Sequence record: NC_010811.2
Length of the DNA stretch: 64,000 bases
Strand: one strand, 5' to 3'
Positions 4,401 to 63,410 of this stretch are shown one piece after another. Numbering within the stretch: the first letter of the stretch is position 1; each line of letters starts with the position of its first letter. The notes beneath the pieces are model-generated. The model saw only the letters and a program-made list of their open reading frames with translations. It did no database searches and was not told where the DNA came from. The position numbers and the translations under genes were made by a program.

Positions 4401-5128
4401 GATTTGATTTGGATTTCGAGATGGTCGAAGGTCAGGGTGTCCGGCAGATACAGGAGGCGTTGAATGTTGAGCGCATGGGCAGCCACACCACCCTCCAATT
4501 GAACGCCCAGGCGACCGCGGACTGGACGATCAAAGGTCAACGTAACAGGAGCAGCATACGTGGGTGCGGTGATCTCAAATTGATGGCCGTACGGCACTGT
4601 CTCACCCTCGTGCTTCAACGGCTTGCTGCGCGGTATCCACAAAAGGCGCTCGTTTACCATCGTGTACAGTGCTGCGCTGAAGTGGGCGGCCACCGCGTCG
4701 GATTGACGCTCTGGTTTCACGGTCTGCGACACCTGCTCAGCAATCTGGTCCAAGATCTTCAGCATCAACATCAGAGTCACGGCGTCAATCAGACGCACAC
4801 TTTGGCCGTTGTACAACGTCACCTGATCGTCGAAGATGACGACACCGATACCAGCGAGCATCCCCACATAGTTGTAGCCATCTTGGAACAGCTGATCACG
4901 AACCGACTCCGATTCAGCAGGGCGCCACTTCAGCTGCGACATGAACTGAGGGAACTTCATGCCTGCCACTCGATTGCCACTCATGATGTTGTGCAGCGCG
5001 CTGTACCATTCACTGTGGAATGGGACTTCCTCAGAGTTGAAGTAGTACACGAGCCCCGGCAGCAGGTCAGTGCGCGGGCTACGCTTGTTGGTGAGGACGA
5101 ATGCGTTGGGTATCACTTGCTCTAGCAT
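4397..5128 (-). CDS. Hypothetical protein
   Basis: Long ORF in the operon; start set at ATG 5128 after the upstream stop. Confidence 0.7.
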   Translation of the reverse strand: MLEQVIPNAFVLTNKRSPRTDLLPGLVYYFNSEEVPFHSEWYSALHNIMSGNRVAGMKFPQFMSQLKWRPAESESVRDQLFQDGYNYVGMLAGIGVVIFDDQVTLYNGQSVRLIDAVTLMLMLKILDQIAEQVSQTVKPERQSDAVAAHFSAALYTMVNERLLWIPRSKPLKHEGETVPYGHQFEITAPTYAAPVTLTFDRPVRGRLGVQLEGGVAAHALNIQRLLYLPDTLTFDHLEIQIKS

Positions 5129-19121: not shown

Positions 19122-19134
19122 AGAAACTGAAACA

Positions 19135-19204
19135 ACTCCCTTAGTGGGTTCGAACCACTGCCTGCCCCCGTCGGGACCGCTCTACCACTCTAAGCTAAAG
19201 GGAA
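19135..19204 (-). ncRNA. tRNA-like RNA with 4-nt anticodon loop (pseudo-tRNA)
   Basis: TTCCCTT/AAGGGAG acceptor, GCTT/GAGC D arm, GTCCC-GACG-GGGGC arm, AGTGG-TTCGAAC-CCACT T arm; no CCA. Confidence 0.7.
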
Positions 19205-19273
19205 TTGAGTTTGCTCACCAGCATGGAGAAGGTGCGCACAGTGCACCCCCTTGGTCCATACACGGCTTGCAGA

Positions 19274-20091: not shown

Positions 20092-20425
20092 CTCCTAACG
20101 CAGACAACATCTTCTGGAGCTTGAGGATGCGCGACTGAAGCTGGACCTTACGGCGCTCAACGATTTCTTTCAGCGCGCCAGCATCTGGGCCGTAGAGCTT
20201 CGCCACCCACTGAAGCTTGGTGACGACCACCACTTCAACGTTGTTGGCGCCTGCGTCAAGCTGCACCAGCGCGTCATCACCGTAGAAGTCGATCTTCTCG
20301 TCGATGATGGCGCGCAACTGAGCGAGCGACCCGCAGAAATCACTGAGCGAGTCGATATAGACAGCGCCCGGCACAGTGATGAGTCGCGTAGTCTTCAGCT
20401 CTTCACGAAAATCTTCAAGACTCAT
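20027..20425 (-). CDS. Hypothetical protein
   Basis: ORF with SD (GAGG) upstream and a C-terminal coiled coil. Confidence 0.65.
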   Translation of the reverse strand: MSLEDFREELKTTRLITVPGAVYIDSLSDFCGSLAQLRAIIDEKIDFYGDDALVQLDAGANNVEVVVVTKLQWVAKLYGPDAGALKEIVERRKVQLQSRILKLQKMLSALGGEDGTGAVRSTARRKPAARAE

Positions 20426-20440
20426 AGGAACCTCTAAGGG

Positions 20441-20830
20441 TTAGTCAAGAAATACGGCGTGGCCGTCTTGAATCCAGCCATGCCACAGACCACCAGCCGA
20501 ACCGTCGATCGACGGATGGACGGTGATGTTGTCGAATGTGGCTGCGTCAGGATCAGGACTGCACAACCACGTGATGTTGGAATACGCGTCGCCTGTAACG
20601 CCTTGGACTCGCGTCCAGCCGTGTTCAGGATTCTTACCCTCGGCGATCTGCAAATCGGCCAACGCCGCAGTGAACAGCGCGTGCTGCTCACGCCAGCCAA
20701 CAGACTGGAACATGCACGACTGATAGAAGCTCTTGTCGGGCATCGGGCAGCGGAAGATGAAGCCAACGCGCTGTCCGTCGGCCACCAGCCAACGAGGGTC
20801 AAGCGTGTTGAGTGGGATTCGCGTTGGCAT
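20441..20830 (-). CDS. DUF6527-like hypothetical protein
   Basis: C-terminal ITVHPSIDGSAGGLWHGWIQDG; start at ATG 20830. Confidence 0.5.
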   Translation of the reverse strand: MPTRIPLNTLDPRWLVADGQRVGFIFRCPMPDKSFYQSCMFQSVGWREQHALFTAALADLQIAEGKNPEHGWTRVQGVTGDAYSNITWLCSPDPDAATFDNITVHPSIDGSAGGLWHGWIQDGHAVFLD

Positions 20831-21017
20831 TAGCCGTCTGCTCCTCGAAGATTTCCATGCGCGCCAGCACATAGCGGATGTCGTCGATGCTGTAGTACTC
20901 ACCGAACAGCTGAACGAACGGACGACCACCGTACATGTACGGGGGATTGGTGTCCACCTCCTTCACGAGGTCGCGCTGTGCGCGGCGCAGTGCCGATTCA
21001 CGTTCTTGGGGCGTCAT
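20799..21017 (-). CDS. Hypothetical protein
   Basis: ATG 21017 (MTPQERE...). Confidence 0.55.
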   Translation of the reverse strand: MTPQERESALRRAQRDLVKEVDTNPPYMYGGRPFVQLFGEYYSIDDIRYVLARMEIFEEQTANANANPTQHA

Positions 21018-21163
21018 ATACGTACAGGTCAGGTTTGGTTCCGAGACGAGCGGCAACACCGGCAGACGTCAGCAGCAAGTCCTTGTATCGGCCAAGCGGA
21101 ATCTGGTCGATGTACTCGATCACCGGCTTCTGCCCGAAGTGGACATTGAAATCCATCGCCGCC

Positions 21164-21511
21164 TCACTTACAGTCAGAAGCTGTGATGAACAGCGACCAT
21201 TCGGGGTCGTTCTTGATGGTCGGATTTGCGAAGAATTGAATCGGCTGATCCACGCCCTGCTCCTTCATGAGAGCAGCGTATTCCTGACACAGGACCAACT
21301 TGTTCTCACCGTTGAGAGCGGGATAGTAGGTGGGTCGCGCGCACACCGTGATCAGCTGCACGAGCTCGATGTCGGAGTTCTGAGACTTGATCTGGTTGAA
21401 AGCTTCACGCAGCTTGGGAATCGCGTCGTTGGCTTCCTGCATAGTCTGCAAATTTCCAAGGACATTCTTCATTGCCGCAGTAACGGTCTGAGCGTGCTTG
21501 GATTGATTCAT
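21164..21511 (-). CDS. Hypothetical protein
   Basis: ORF with GAGG SD. Confidence 0.65.
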   Translation of the reverse strand: MNQSKHAQTVTAAMKNVLGNLQTMQEANDAIPKLREAFNQIKSQNSDIELVQLITVCARPTYYPALNGENKLVLCQEYAALMKEQGVDQPIQFFANPTIKNDPEWSLFITASDCK

Positions 21512-21543
21512 GTGAACCTCGAGGGTTAAACAGATTTGCTTTC

Positions 21544-21669
21544 TGGGCGACCGGAAGGAATCGAACCTCCGTCTGCAGGTACCAATCTCAGCATTCGATC
21601 CGGCCTGTTAAGGTTCCCGCGTGTCTAGCGCCGAGATGCACTGCAATTCTGCCACTGAACTACGATCGC
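21544..21669 (-). ncRNA. 126-nt tRNA-like RNA with a 62-nt structured segment in place of the anticodon loop
   Basis: GCGATCG/CGGTCGC acceptor, GTTC-AGTGGCA-GAAT D arm, TGCAG/CTGCA stem, GGAGG-TTCGATT-CCTTC T arm. Confidence 0.8.
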
Positions 21670-21706
21670 GTTGATGCTTTCTGGGCAGCCCTCGGCAGAA
21701 GGCGTC

Positions 21707-21952
21707 CTAGAAAGTTGTTACTTCGTACTTGCGTCCGTGAAACTGGGCGATCCAAATCTCCTGGTCCTGATGCGTGCAGAAGATCTGGTCACCAAGATCT
21801 TCGCGACGCACGAATATTGTGCATTTGATCTTGGCAAACTTCTCGTCAGCATGAAGCACTTGGTAGGTATTCCACTGGCCTTTGAGCTCGACCAAAGAGC
21901 CTTTCGTTAGCAGTTGCATGTCGAAGAACGGTTGAAAGTCCAGGGATTTCAT
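21707..21952 (-). CDS. Hypothetical protein inserted in the RNA-gene cluster
   Basis: 81-aa ORF with GGAG SD. Confidence 0.6.
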   Translation of the reverse strand: MKSLDFQPFFDMQLLTKGSLVELKGQWNTYQVLHADEKFAKIKCTIFVRREDLGDQIFCTHQDQEIWIAQFHGRKYEVTTF

Positions 21953-22000: not shown

Positions 22001-22178
22001 GTTCGTTACATCCACCCTAGTTACGATAATGAGAAAACCCGACCCTCTACCGCTGAGGTACCGCCGTCCTTAATCAACTCGTGAGAATTGACTAAGGCAC
22101 GGCGGACGGGATTCGAACCCGCGTCTTTCAGGCTTAACCATGGCTTCTTAGAGTAATCGCCATGGCAGGGTGCCGAAC
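22001..22178 (-). ncRNA. Circularly permuted tRNA-like RNA (YrlA/Y-RNA-like), copy B
   Basis: 5' to 3' order: CCTGA, AAGAC, T arm GCGGG-TTCGAAT-CCCGT, CCGCCGT, hairpin linker, ACGGCGG, D arm CCTC-AGCGGTA-GAGG, TCGGG. The ends pair (CACCCTG/TAGGGTG, GTTCG/CGAAC). Confidence 0.75.
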
Positions 22179-22210
22179 TACTGAACTTAGATTGCTTACA
22201 GGTCACACGT

Positions 22211-22385
22211 TAGAGGTAATACGCGAACGATAATCGAACTCGACGCCTGATTAGGGCGTTGCGTCTACCAGTTTCGCCACTCCTACATCAAACACGCTGC
22301 AAGCAACACGCTTGATGCAGGAGGTTGGATTCGAACCAACAGTGAGTTCCGTATAACGCTAACGACTACGCTAACGCTTCCTCTA
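22211..22385 (-). ncRNA. Circularly permuted tRNA-like RNA (YrlA/Y-RNA-like), copy A
   Basis: T arm GTTGG-TTCGAAT-CCAAC and CTCCTGC precede GTAGGAG and a Leu-type D arm (GGCGAAACTGGTAGACGC). The ends pair (TAGAGG/CCTCTA, TAGTCG/CGATTA, GAACTC/GAGTTC). Confidence 0.7.
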
Positions 22386-22436: not shown

Positions 22437-23234
22437 TTACACCTGATTGCTGGCCGGCGACGTGCGCAGCGGTCCCAGGATCAGGTCGGCGAGACGCTGG
22501 CCGATGTTGTCAACCGTTTCCACCTGCACGCTGTTGGCGCGAGTACGAGCGGCCTTGGTCTCGACGATCAGTTCATCGATGATGGCCAGCGCCTGCGCCT
22601 TCTGCAGTGCAGTAGTGGCGCCACTCACCGTGTTGATGGTGAAGGTGCCGACCACCTTGTCGGTCGTCACTTCCTTGACTTGTGCCGGATGCTTGTCGGT
22701 TGCTTCGTACAGCACGACCGGGGTCATCACCTTCTCGGTCTTCGTGGCGACTTGCGGCTGCGTGGCGCGCCACGTGCCGGGTTGCGCAGCGCTTGCGTCC
22801 GGCGCCCAGCCCTTCGACGCGTCGAGCGTCGGAATCTGGGTGAACAGCTTGCGGAGTTCGTTGAGGCGGACTTCCAGCCCCATGAGCTCGTCCACCGGCA
22901 CGTTGGTGGCAATTGCCTGACCGTTGTACATCAGATCGGCGACAGCCTTGGTGTTGGTCACGTTCTTCGTGAAGAGCGTCTGCTCGGCCTTGGCCCAATA
23001 GGTGAGATAGTAGTCGAGCGTGGCGAGCACCGTCGTCGGCAGTTCCTTGTCCTGACGCGCCGCCGCTTCGATCTTGGCATTCGACGGATCGTCGGTCAGC
23101 AGTTCGAGGGTCTTCGTGAAGCCGGTGAAATACTGATCGCCCTTGGCGAACTTGTTCTGCGTGTCAGCGGTCAGCTGATCACGTGCGTTGATCACAGTCT
23201 TTTCAGCTGCGAGAATTTCGTGGAGTTGTGCCAT
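22437..23234 (-). CDS. Conserved-looking helical hypothetical protein
   Basis: MAQLHEILAAEK...; strong phage-like codon usage; own GTAAATA motif at 23284-23290. Confidence 0.8.
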   Translation of the reverse strand: MAQLHEILAAEKTVINARDQLTADTQNKFAKGDQYFTGFTKTLELLTDDPSNAKIEAAARQDKELPTTVLATLDYYLTYWAKAEQTLFTKNVTNTKAVADLMYNGQAIATNVPVDELMGLEVRLNELRKLFTQIPTLDASKGWAPDASAAQPGTWRATQPQVATKTEKVMTPVVLYEATDKHPAQVKEVTTDKVVGTFTINTVSGATTALQKAQALAIIDELIVETKAARTRANSVQVETVDNIGQRLADLILGPLRTSPASNQV

Positions 23235-40581: not shown

Positions 40582-40899
40582 ATGTCCCTACACCAATCGC
40601 ACCCGCACCTGAACTACGCTCTTGAGGTGTACATCTCAAAGCATCAGTACATCGCATCGCCTCTGCAAGTCGTGAGCTACCTCACTGCGCCGACTTTCAA
40701 GGCGGATCTCGACGAAATGGGCGTAGATCCGGCACAAGCCGGTGCGCAAGCCGACACGTGGCTCAGTGCACCACTGAACATGGCCCTCTTCCTGAAAGAA
40801 GTGATCGAGGAAAACGAGCCGTCGGTACTCGGCGCTGAACATCACACTGGAGCCGAGGCGCTGGCCGCTCTGCTCTGGGTCGCAGACAATCTCGCGTAA
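40582..40899 (+). CDS. Early hypothetical protein
   Basis: First gene after the early promoter. Confidence 0.75.
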   Translation: MSLHQSHPHLNYALEVYISKHQYIASPLQVVSYLTAPTFKADLDEMGVDPAQAGAQADTWLSAPLNMALFLKEVIEENEPSVLGAEHHTGAEALAALLWVADNLA

Positions 40900-40909
40900 G
40901 GGGTTCAAC

Positions 40910-41608
40910 ATGTCCAACGTCTACACCGCAGACTTCGGCGCAACCAAGTTCCAGACCACGCGTCGTGGGGTCAACGCCACGTCGCCCATCCTCAAGAATG
41001 GCGTCAAGGTCGCCACGCTCCACGATGTGGCCGAGCGCATCTCCACCGACGTGGTGTTCGTCAACACCCAGGAGCGCTTTGCCTTCTTGGAGGCCGCTCA
41101 GTCGCACGGGTTCACGGGGTCCGAGCACTTCGCCATCTCCGAGTTCGCTCGCCATCTGCTGGATAAGGCGTCCAACGCTTTCCTGGAGGCTGTCGAGCCA
41201 TCCAAGCCCAAGCGCAAGGCCAAGCCGTTGCCCGCTCCTACGCCCGAGCCACAACGCACAGTTCCAGAAGCGGGCGCGGACTTCATCCGCGAAGCGTTCG
41301 GCATCGAAACGCAGTTCGAGCGGCAAGCGTACCAACCCAAGCGCAAGCGCCTGCTCTTCTCGTCGTCGGGCAAGGTTCCATCGTTTCCTGAGTTGGAACG
41401 CATCTGTCGCCAGTTCACTGCGCAGCGCTGCCAAAACGTCAACACGTCGGTCTTCATCAGCGAAACGCCAGTGTTCCACTCCAGTACGTGGAGCATTCGC
41501 GAGCTGACTGTATCGTTCGATGGGCACCGAGTAGTGTTCACCAAGTACCACAACGCTACTGACCTGCACATCGAGCTCATCGATCGCAGCGCTGTCTACG
41601 AGGAGTAA
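40910..41608 (+). CDS. Early hypothetical protein
   Basis: ORF packing. Confidence 0.75.
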   Translation: MSNVYTADFGATKFQTTRRGVNATSPILKNGVKVATLHDVAERISTDVVFVNTQERFAFLEAAQSHGFTGSEHFAISEFARHLLDKASNAFLEAVEPSKPKRKAKPLPAPTPEPQRTVPEAGADFIREAFGIETQFERQAYQPKRKRLLFSSSGKVPSFPELERICRQFTAQRCQNVNTSVFISETPVFHSSTWSIRELTVSFDGHRVVFTKYHNATDLHIELIDRSAVYEE

Positions 41609-41611
41609 ATC

Positions 41612-42040
41612 ATGGAAAAGTTCTTCGCAGAGACAGTCGTTACCCATGAAGGATTCGGGCGTGGGGTTGTTCTCGCAGAGACGGCGCCCGACGTGTACGA
41701 GGTGCGATTCGATCGGGTCATCGACCCTTTCGTCACCGATTACGAATGCTCTCGTACTCATACGGTGAGCGCCGAGCATCTAGAGCGTGTGGTCCTCACG
41801 TTGGCCGACTTTAAGCCCGGCGACAAGCTGGAATTCACCCAGCGCTTCCGTGTCGGCGACAAGACCGTGACCGAGGTGCGGACCGCTGTTGTCACCCTCA
41901 TCAACTGGGAAGGTAACGGCCTCGTGTCGTACACAGGTCGCGTTCAAGAAGGCATGATGCGGACGGGCTCCGGCGCGTTCGACCCGGCAGCGGTGGGCAC
42001 CAAGCCGTTCGGTTTCCACTGCGCAGTGCGTAAGGTCTAA
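41612..42040 (+). CDS. Hypothetical protein (SH3-like segments)
   Basis: VTHEGFGRGVV; FKPGDKLEF. Confidence 0.7.
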   Translation: MEKFFAETVVTHEGFGRGVVLAETAPDVYEVRFDRVIDPFVTDYECSRTHTVSAEHLERVVLTLADFKPGDKLEFTQRFRVGDKTVTEVRTAVVTLINWEGNGLVSYTGRVQEGMMRTGSGAFDPAAVGTKPFGFHCAVRKV

Positions 42041-42050
42041 GGAGTGGGTC

Positions 42051-42380
42051 ATGAAGTTCGTCAACAGCAAGAAGGTCAAGGACCATGCGTACGACCTGTA
42101 TCTGGTCCGTCAGCAGAAGCGTGAGCTCGCTGAGAAGATGCGCGAGTTGGAAGCGCAAGAGCAGGCGTTGTCCGCGTTTCTGCGCGCAAAGCGCGCCGAC
42201 GAGGACTTCCAGTTTGCAGATCCCGAAGGCTATCTGATGGAAACGGATTTCGTGCCGGGGTCGCGTATGGATGTGAACGACGCGCAGGTCCGCCGAGACT
42301 ACGCCAAGATGGGTAAGAAGGTGCCCATGAAGAAGAGCGAGTGGGTCACGGTCAAAGTCCGCTACATCCTGGAGAAGTAA
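42051..42380 (+). CDS. Hypothetical coiled-coil protein
   Basis: AAGGAG SD. Confidence 0.75.
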   Translation: MKFVNSKKVKDHAYDLYLVRQQKRELAEKMRELEAQEQALSAFLRAKRADEDFQFADPEGYLMETDFVPGSRMDVNDAQVRRDYAKMGKKVPMKKSEWVTVKVRYILEK

Positions 42381-62342: not shown

Positions 62343-63410
62343 ATGAGCAAGAGCAAGAAGGCAGTCAACACCACGACCAAAGCCGCGAAGAAGGCAGATG
62401 CGGCCAGCAAGAAGTCGGCTGTGAAGGTGGTGGAAGCCAAGGCGCTGGACAAGCGCTTCAAGAAGGGTGCCATCGTGTATCACACTGGTGGTCTGGGTCC
62501 GGTCAAGTTCTACGAACCGCCGAAGGACAGCAGCGAGTATGCAGTGGTGCGAACGCACGCTGGCACCGAGGCTCGCGTTCTGGCCTCGCAATTGCGACTG
62601 GCAACCGGCGCCGAAGTCAAGACCTACACCAAGCGCGTCCGCGAACATCGCAAGTTGGAAAAGGCCAGCGAGCTGCGGCGCATCACTCGCAAGGGTGCGA
62701 TCGTGTTCCACGCCGCGATGGGTCCGGTCAAGATGGTGGGTCCGGCACCGCACGATGGACAGTTCATCGTTCGACTGCCCCGTGGCGAAGAGTCGCCGGT
62801 GCTGTACAGCAATCTGCGTCTGGCCACCCCGTCCGAGGTCAAGGAATACAGCAAGAAGGTGGACGAACGCAAGAAGGCTGCGGCGCAGGACGCCACCAAG
62901 AAATTCGCGTTCCCCACTTCGGCCAGCGTGGAAGCGGCCAAGGCCGAGGAATCCGCCAAGGTTGAACAGCCGACCGAAGCGCGCCTCAACGGTTTCATCA
63001 TCCATGTGGGCGATACCGTGCTGGGCGATGTGGAAGGTACGCTGGCGGCTATCGTGGTCAGTATCCTGCCGAATCGCAATCTGGTGGTTCGCGAGGAGGG
63101 CAGCGACGCCAACCAGATCTGGACCGAGGGCTCGGTTCATGGCGTCCGTCCGGCAGCCGAGGATCGTGATCCGAGTGTCCTGGGCCAGAAGTTCAAGGAA
63201 CTGAAGATCAAGTTCGAAGAAGTGGGGCTGTTCGCTCCGTTCACGTACAAGGGGGTGCACCACGTCAAGGTCTCCAAGTCCAACGCGATCCGCGCCGTGA
63301 TCGAAGGCACGCCGGTCGCTCCGCGCGCCGTCTTGGCAACGGACGATGCTCCGATGAAGGGCTCGCACGTTGTCCGATTCCGCAAGAGCGACAAGGTCAC
63401 CCGCTTCTAA
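62343..63410 (+). CDS. K-rich N-terminus plus tandem SH3/Tudor-like repeats
   Basis: FKKGAIVYHTGGLGPVK, RKGAIVFHAAMGPVK, IHVGDTV repeats. Confidence 0.75.
   Translation: MSKSKKAVNTTTKAAKKADAASKKSAVKVVEAKALDKRFKKGAIVYHTGGLGPVKFYEPPKDSSEYAVVRTHAGTEARVLASQLRLATGAEVKTYTKRVREHRKLEKASELRRITRKGAIVFHAAMGPVKMVGPAPHDGQFIVRLPRGEESPVLYSNLRLATPSEVKEYSKKVDERKKAAAQDATKKFAFPTSASVEAAKAEESAKVEQPTEARLNGFIIHVGDTVLGDVEGTLAAIVVSILPNRNLVVREEGSDANQIWTEGSVHGVRPAAEDRDPSVLGQKFKELKIKFEEVGLFAPFTYKGVHHVKVSKSNAIRAVIEGTPVAPRAVLATDDAPMKGSHVVRFRKSDKVTRF

Follow-up and report, generated by a model that had tools for sequence, protein, structure and literature searches.

In the engineered tRNA scaffolds of Ponchon and Dardel, the anticodon stem-loop is reportedly replaced by a cargo RNA. 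YrlA and other bacterial Y-RNA-like tRNA mimics are non-decoding RNAs that have kept the tRNA elbow (cf. PMC4201824). RtcB, where it is encoded by jumbo phages, is usually read as an enzyme of tRNA repair (PMC7824862).

The DNA analysed here (the window, 64,000 nucleotides, positions 167256-231255 of the record) belongs to Ralstonia phage phiRSL1 (NC_010811.2, 231,255 bp). It contains a tRNA-shaped gene of 124 nt, including the discriminator C, on the minus strand at 21546-21669, which is recognized by Rfam and by ARAGORN in intron mode. The element lies in a 195-bp gap between ORF269 (21707-21952) and ORF268 (21164-21511), and all neighbouring genes are co-oriented. The GenBank annotation of NC_010811.2 lists only a tRNA-Gly and a tRNA-Pro in this region and leaves the element unannotated.

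The Rfam model RF00005 matches 21546-21669 (minus strand) with 41.3 bits, at a gathering score of 29 and an E value of 2.5e-5 for the window. The alignment extends over the full model length (1-71), with 62 nt facing nine model positions (31-39). The acceptor stem (5' strand GCGAUCG, 21663-21669, minus strand as for all parts of the element) pairs at 7/7 positions, including one U.G, the D stem at 4/4 and the T stem at 5/5, all without mismatches. The D arm GUUC-AGUGGCA-GAAU (21646-21660) is followed by U26 and the anticodon-stem 5' strand GCAG (27-30; 21641-21645); on the far side of the insert, the anticodon-stem 3' strand CUGC (40-43) and a 4-nt variable loop AGAC (21571-21578) lead into the T arm GGAGG-UUCGAUU-CCUUC and the acceptor 3' strand CGGUCGC (21547-21570). 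The conserved bases U8, A14, G18 and G19, the G53-C61 pair and the T loop UUCGAUU are all present. The cloverleaf with acceptor, D and T arms and tertiary bases that defines membership of the Rfam tRNA family is therefore there, and the tRNA body with canonical arms and a 62-nt insert that the earlier note had described is borne out by the Rfam score and the fully paired stems. A decoding tRNA would also have a 5-bp anticodon stem and a 7-nt loop with U33 and a purine at 37, a combination that the element lacks. At the 3' end, C73 is followed by CAG; CCA is not encoded in register, unlike in the two canonical tRNAs of the phage.

A strict scan for tRNA cores with long inserts (7/7 acceptor, 5/5 T stem, T-loop consensus, D arm, U8, total length 96-199 nt) returned the element as the sole match in the genome (231 kb) and had no match in 20 shuffled ones. 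Because the match is unique in the genome and shuffled sequence yields none, the tRNA core is not a product of chance. Applied to 876 kb of bacterial DNA surrounding tRNA-Gly genes, the scan had a single, trivial match, a partial tRNA duplication. At this locus (L162:2767-2954), the 5' half of a tRNA-Gly gene is partly repeated ahead of the gene itself, as is typical of an integration scar at a tRNA gene.

The type of tRNA body was assessed with a D-arm and T-loop pattern (GTAGTTCAGTGGYAGAAY...GGTTCGATTCC) searched in one genome per bacterial species, taking the first 120 matches. These comprised 112 tRNA-Gly (53 CCC, 52 UCC, 7 GCC), 6 tRNA-Ile, 2 tRNA-Trp and no tRNA-Thr, which makes the D arm diagnostic of bacterial tRNA-Gly. 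Compared in register with the 71-nt tRNA-Gly(CCC) genes, the flanks of the element (29 nt on the 5' side and 33 nt on the 3' side) are identical at 48/62 positions. They share the stem strands GCAG...CUGC, the base at position 26 and the 4-nt variable loop, in the same register as in the Rfam alignment. Relative to tRNA-Gly, the nine bases C31-UUCCCAA-G39 are exchanged for 62 nt in the element. Identity of tRNA-Thr lies in G1-C72, C2-G71, G35 and U36, usually with A73 or U73, and the first two pairs had been taken in the earlier note as fitting tRNA-Thr. In the element, G1-C72 and C2-G71 are accompanied by G3-C70, a 7-nt D loop and a 4-nt variable loop, as in a tRNA-Gly-type body. The assignment to tRNA-Thr fails on this body, on C73 and on the fact that GGU arises from one excision frame only. 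Judged from its sequence, the body of the element is of the glycine-tRNA type, not of the threonine type. An origin from tRNA-Gln was rejected: it gave the best covariance-model matches in two bacterial genomes, but only 35-36 of the 62 flanking positions agree in register, as against 48/62 for tRNA-Gly.

The 62-nt insert (21579-21640) takes the place of pair 31-39 and the 7-nt anticodon loop. The 8-bp helix that had been noticed within it is real, and extends to 9 bp when G.U pairs are counted; its 5' strand AUCUCGGCG lies at 21629-21637 and its 3' strand UGCUGAGAU at 21585-21593. Three of its pairs are G.U pairs, valid only in RNA of the sense strand. In the predicted folds the helix stacks via UGC/GUA on the anticodon stem, which would give a 17-bp arm with two small bulges on the 3' side, crowned by an apical hairpin CGG(GAA)CCU-UAAC-AGGCCG (21601-21619). 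This hairpin appears in both the minimum-energy and the centroid fold and has no comparative support. Compared with shuffled sequences, the folding of the insert is modest (z -1.4 for the arm, -0.1 for the whole RNA) and not thermodynamically exceptional. The genome holds no other copy of the insert, and no match was found in phage collections or related records; a repeated mobile element was therefore rejected as its source. Neither edge of the insert retains a remnant of the Gly loop in its sequence, hence the loop was replaced and not simply interrupted by an insertion.

ARAGORN makes no call at the element in its default mode, without introns. When introns are allowed, it reports a tRNA-Thr(GGU) with a 55-nt intron after position 32 and the loop UU-GGU-AC, and so reproduces exactly the 55-nt excision to TT-GGT-AC of the earlier note. 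The heptamer UUGGUAC that resembles an anticodon loop in this reading is located at 21579-21585 and is partly paired (GUA with UGC). Elsewhere in the genome (record positions 62728-62942), ARAGORN calls a 'tRNA-Leu' whose intron would measure 121 nt; one of its acceptor pairs is mismatched and its extra arm is drawn very long.

The element could accordingly be read as an intron-bearing tRNA from which a putative endonuclease removes 53-55 nt, after which the phage RtcB joins the halves into a decoding tRNA (Thr GGU in the frame of the earlier note). The U33 and A37 of the loop accepted by ARAGORN, the partial pairing of the anticodon with the insert, as in pre-tRNAs, and the presence of a full-length RtcB (ORF082, PF01139, 420 bits; record positions 40868-42121, match 40946-42115, outside the window) are consistent with this possibility, which we nevertheless consider improbable. 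The 55-nt cut leaves 23 nt between the D and T arms, compared to 25-26 in all 120 relatives, and one stacked pair too few. A cut of the canonical length, 53 nt, results in the anticodon UGG with U37 in every frame, whereupon ARAGORN calls a tRNA-Pro, and a third excision frame leaves an 8-nt loop. No excision frame that yields a canonical tRNA was found. As the other frames give Pro(UGG) or nothing usable, the anticodon is a product of the frame that is chosen. The Gly-type body and C73 also argue against a spliced tRNA-Thr. Moreover, no bulge-helix-bulge (3-4-3) was found on the anticodon stem of the element; such motifs occur anywhere at chance level (8 strict ones against 5.2 in shuffled sequence, 40 relaxed ones against 39), and all 8 strict ones are incompatible with the cloverleaf.

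In the phage, EndA (PF01974) was not detected at E <= 0.1, with controls positive in archaea only, and no Rnl-type RNA ligase (Pfam PF09414) was found. Between 18800 and 22000, Rfam at E <= 1 returned tRNA matches only and no ribozyme or group I intron, the insert itself measuring 62 nt. The search for ligase and endonuclease genes that the earlier note had recommended thus recovered RtcB at 420 bits, and neither EndA nor PF09414. For jumbo phages, RtcB is explained by tRNA repair (PMC7824862). In phiRSL1, ORF082 is followed by an acyl carrier protein gene, and the small flanking ORFs have no family matches. That a putative unrecognized endonuclease, possibly encoded by the phage, cuts out 53-55 nt at a non-canonical site of the anticodon arm and acts together with the phage RtcB to mature a non-canonical but working tRNA without a bulge-helix-bulge appears very unlikely to us. 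An unspliced tRNA look-alike is a likelier reading than a tRNA carrying a novel type of intron. Between the non-spliced mimic and the cut-and-ligate pathway that had been left as alternatives, the evidence favours the mimic; the argument from Thr identity falls away, and the full-length RtcB of the phage speaks for cutting and ligation.

Four metagenome runs contain DNA that is nearly identical (~99%) to this region; the insert is retained in one activated-sludge contig of 49.6 kb and in two contigs from soil. Within the element, these relatives differ from phiRSL1 solely by C37->U (relatives X1 and X2; window position 21633), whereby a C-G pair of the 9-bp helix becomes U.G. The comparison of homologues for presence of the insert, proposed earlier, hence shows it kept in all ~99%-identical metagenome relatives, and no other homologue was found. 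No match was obtained in IMG/VR for the exact T-arm/acceptor pattern, and blastn of both halves of the element against 50,697 phage records gave generic T-arm matches only. A covariance model of the whole element, applied to 76 loci, five related phage records and ValKK3, returned only ordinary tRNAs with the insert deleted. The nearest distinct relative, a 215-kb record that is 91% complete and whose polA is 53% identical, has the DUF7873 gene and permuted mimics; the element was not found in it with the covariance model. A metagenome scan with DUF7873 returned no relative above 57% identity and no copy of the element at intermediate distance.

The region around the element is highly plastic. 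One soil-metagenome relative lacks 1.1 kb (ORF265-268; window positions 20443-21542), and the deletion ends three bases past the intact element, so that its trailer is joined directly to the start region of ORF264. The activated-sludge relative carries ~200 extra bases near 21105 (about 21101-21109). ORF268 and ORF264 have similar start contexts on the minus strand, AACCCTCGAGGTTCACATG (21512-21530) and AACCCTTAGAGGTTCCTATG (20422-20442), which may constitute a repeated translation-initiation region at the edge of the deletion in the soil relative. The proteins of ORF268 and ORF269 have no relatives in IMG/VR. A 12-nt direct repeat, GCCCAGAAAGCA, flanks the gene on its own strand, with the upstream copy (21675-21686) 5 nt before the 5' end and the downstream copy (21537-21548) overlapping the last acceptor bases and the trailer. 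Only these two copies with at most one mismatch are present in the window, where 0.3 are expected, and the repeat may have been left behind when a tRNA cassette recombined or was duplicated.

Such a scar would fit a relic, that is, what is left of a phage tRNA gene after destruction of its anticodon loop, kept as a young or neutral sequence of no function. The restriction to phiRSL1 and its ~99%-identical relatives, the absence from the nearest distinct relative, the location in a hypervariable stretch with gains and losses of DNA among the relatives, the weak fold statistics and the unencoded CCA, present in both canonical tRNAs of the phage, agree with it as well. Against decay of this kind, all core stems are intact, the loop was replaced outright instead of being interrupted, the insert prolongs the stem as a continuous helix with G.U pairs, and relative X2 has lost the 1.1 kb directly downstream with the element intact to its last base. 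Taking into account also the conserved analogues in other phages described below, we regard a relic as unlikely, if still deserving some weight.

The position between two co-oriented ORFs is reminiscent of tRNA punctuation, and the tRNA core might serve solely to direct RNase P and 3' processing cuts between ORF269 and ORF268, leaving the anticodon arm to drift. Two observations suit a processing mark: the element preserves the acceptor, T and D parts on which RNase P depends but not the anticodon end, and neither a promoter-like nor a terminator-like site was detected beside it on its own strand. A 62-nt helical insert with retained pairing would be left unexplained, and the idea is pure inference; we judge it to be rather improbable.

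The surroundings of the element are rich in tRNA-like shapes. Within 3.5 kb there are the tRNA-Gly, the tRNA-Pro, a non-standard tRNA shape and two permuted tRNA mimics. The non-standard shape (19134-19205, minus strand) is located between the two canonical tRNAs; its acceptor stem measures 8 bp and its anticodon loop 6 nt, and CCA is not encoded. It is non-decoding, and Rfam does not detect it at E <= 1. The permuted mimics lie at 22001-22385, directly after the gene of a DUF7873 protein and before the element. This gene (ORF270, 22437-23234, minus strand; Pfam PF25283, E 1.3e-68) is situated 770 nt upstream of the element, and its product has no recognizable fold neighbours or known fold. 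For ORF260, ORF262-269 and the neighbours of RtcB, PHROGs and Pfam gave at most weak sub-threshold matches or matches of unknown function.

The strict scan was also extended to 75 further loci that encode relatives of DUF7873. Two of these carry homologous tRNA cores (L007:7796-7929 and L033:4468-4604) in which 68-70 nt stand in for the anticodon loop, 1-2 kb downstream of DUF7873 on the same strand. Their anticodon stems, GCCGC/GCAGC in one and GCCGU/ACAGC in the other, show covariation of pair 31-39 (C-G to U-A) with a retained C x A mismatch, and the acceptor and T stems covary, too. No usable anticodon is present. Because neither edge of these inserts offers a U33-type loop, both are, as far as their sequences tell, conserved tRNA-shaped RNAs that cannot be introns. 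Analogues that cannot be spliced into tRNAs speak against the intron in phiRSL1. The insert of phiRSL1 shares no sequence with those of the analogues, hence the link consists of architecture and position only. Comparable elements downstream of DUF7873 are present in RSL1, L007 and L033 and absent in L025, L010-L012 and L035-L037; of the DUF7873 lineages whose flanking DNA suffices for a judgement, about half do not have such an element. A pattern search for the L007/L033 family gave no new members.

Further unusual tRNA shapes were seen at these loci. At L006:1871-1982 and L009:227-338, a tRNA core with an apparently intact Asp stem-loop (UCCA-CUGUCAA-UGGA) has ~44 extra nt, a hairpin followed by UGCAGCA, between the D and anticodon arms, and ARAGORN calls a 78-nt tRNA-Asp from part of it. 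L033:4328-4459, whose tRNA core has its Glu-type stem-loop (CUCC-UUUUCAU-GGAG) intact and accommodates ~58 AT-rich nt between the same arms, immediately precedes the loop-replaced scaffold at 4468-4604. In L007:3219-3345, a tRNA-shaped RNA 2.7 kb upstream of DUF7873, the acceptor stem measures 8 bp and the anticodon region encloses a second complete T arm (GUUAG-GUUCGAUU-CCUAAC). The scan of the ValKK3 tRNA cluster gave one match. The UNCWGCA module is present in ValKK3 (L085:1850-1961) and in L006. It was considered for the phiRSL1 element and rejected, since there is no exact match (ACCUGCA, base-paired), and TROVE and DUF2828 are absent from the phage.

Taken together, we propose that the element encodes a tRNA-scaffold RNA that is neither spliced nor decoding and descends from a gene of the tRNA-Gly type, a reading to which we assign about an even chance. 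The Gly body is kept in register, the 62 nt sit exactly at 31-39 and no canonical excision product exists; the loop was replaced outright, the C37->U change of the relatives keeps the pairing and the G.U pairs are valid in the sense strand only. Non-decoding and permuted tRNA shapes nearby, the L007 and L033 analogues, the absence of such shapes from shuffled genomes and their rarity in bacterial DNA around tRNA genes favour the same conclusion. Against it stand the confinement to ~99%-identical relatives, the nearest distinct relative without the element, the fold z of -1.4 for the insert and the L007 and L033 inserts without sequence similarity.

The proposed scaffold RNA would retain, in register, the acceptor stem, the D and T arms, U26, four anticodon-stem pairs and the 4-nt variable loop, with the closing pair and the 7-nt anticodon loop exchanged for a 62-nt irregular hairpin that may extend the anticodon stem coaxially. 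It would be transcribed within a long minus-strand operon. RNase P would free the 5' end, the tRNA-processing machinery would trim the 3' end and add CCA, and an RNA of ~125 nt would persist without splicing. Its role might be that of a scaffold or of a tRNA look-alike, serving a tRNA-binding protein as bait or cofactor, with the DUF7873 protein and the nearby tRNA mimics as possible partners. If the RNA is made and stable, phiRSL1 would provide a natural counterpart of the laboratory tRNA scaffold with a 62-nt cargo, and a non-permuted member would join the growing set of phage tRNA look-alikes, whose possible roles include decoys against tRNA-targeting defences and cofactors of RNA-binding proteins. 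The element corrects the annotation of a reference jumbo phage, and it illustrates that tRNA finders in intron mode can give such genes arbitrary anticodons.

Among known systems, archaeal and eukaryal tRNA introns resemble the element in being short inserts in the anticodon arm that pair with anticodon-like bases, and RtcB is present in both settings. They differ from it in that the element has no bulge-helix-bulge, EndA or canonical product and would be interrupted at a non-canonical position (31/32-32/33). Species 1 and 2 of phage T4 (rnaC and rnaD) are likewise small stable RNAs inside a phage tRNA cluster, and rnaC has a T arm; there is no sequence similarity, however, and a complete cloverleaf core with an open acceptor stem of 7 bp is missing from the T4 RNAs. 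YrlA, Y-RNA-like RNAs and the permuted mimics linked to DUF7873 share with the element the non-decoding character, the retained tRNA elbow and the location in phage tRNA clusters. Those mimics are circularly permuted, so that the acceptor stem is capped and the ends lie on the anticodon side, whereas the element is not permuted and has an open acceptor end and a closed anticodon end; neither a Ro60/TROVE nor a DUF2828 gene was found in the phage, so that the element does not qualify as a YrlA or Y RNA. The L007 and L033 shapes come closer, with a tRNA core in register, a replaced loop and a place on the same strand downstream of DUF7873, although their bodies have a 5-nt variable loop, their AT-rich inserts show no similarity and their stems contain the C x A mismatch. 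The engineered tRNA scaffolds are alike in their intact acceptor, D and T arms, in the anticodon stem serving as a stalk, in the loop replaced by a structured RNA and in the processing and stabilization by tRNA enzymes that would be expected for the element as well. In contrast to them, the element is natural and encoded by a phage.
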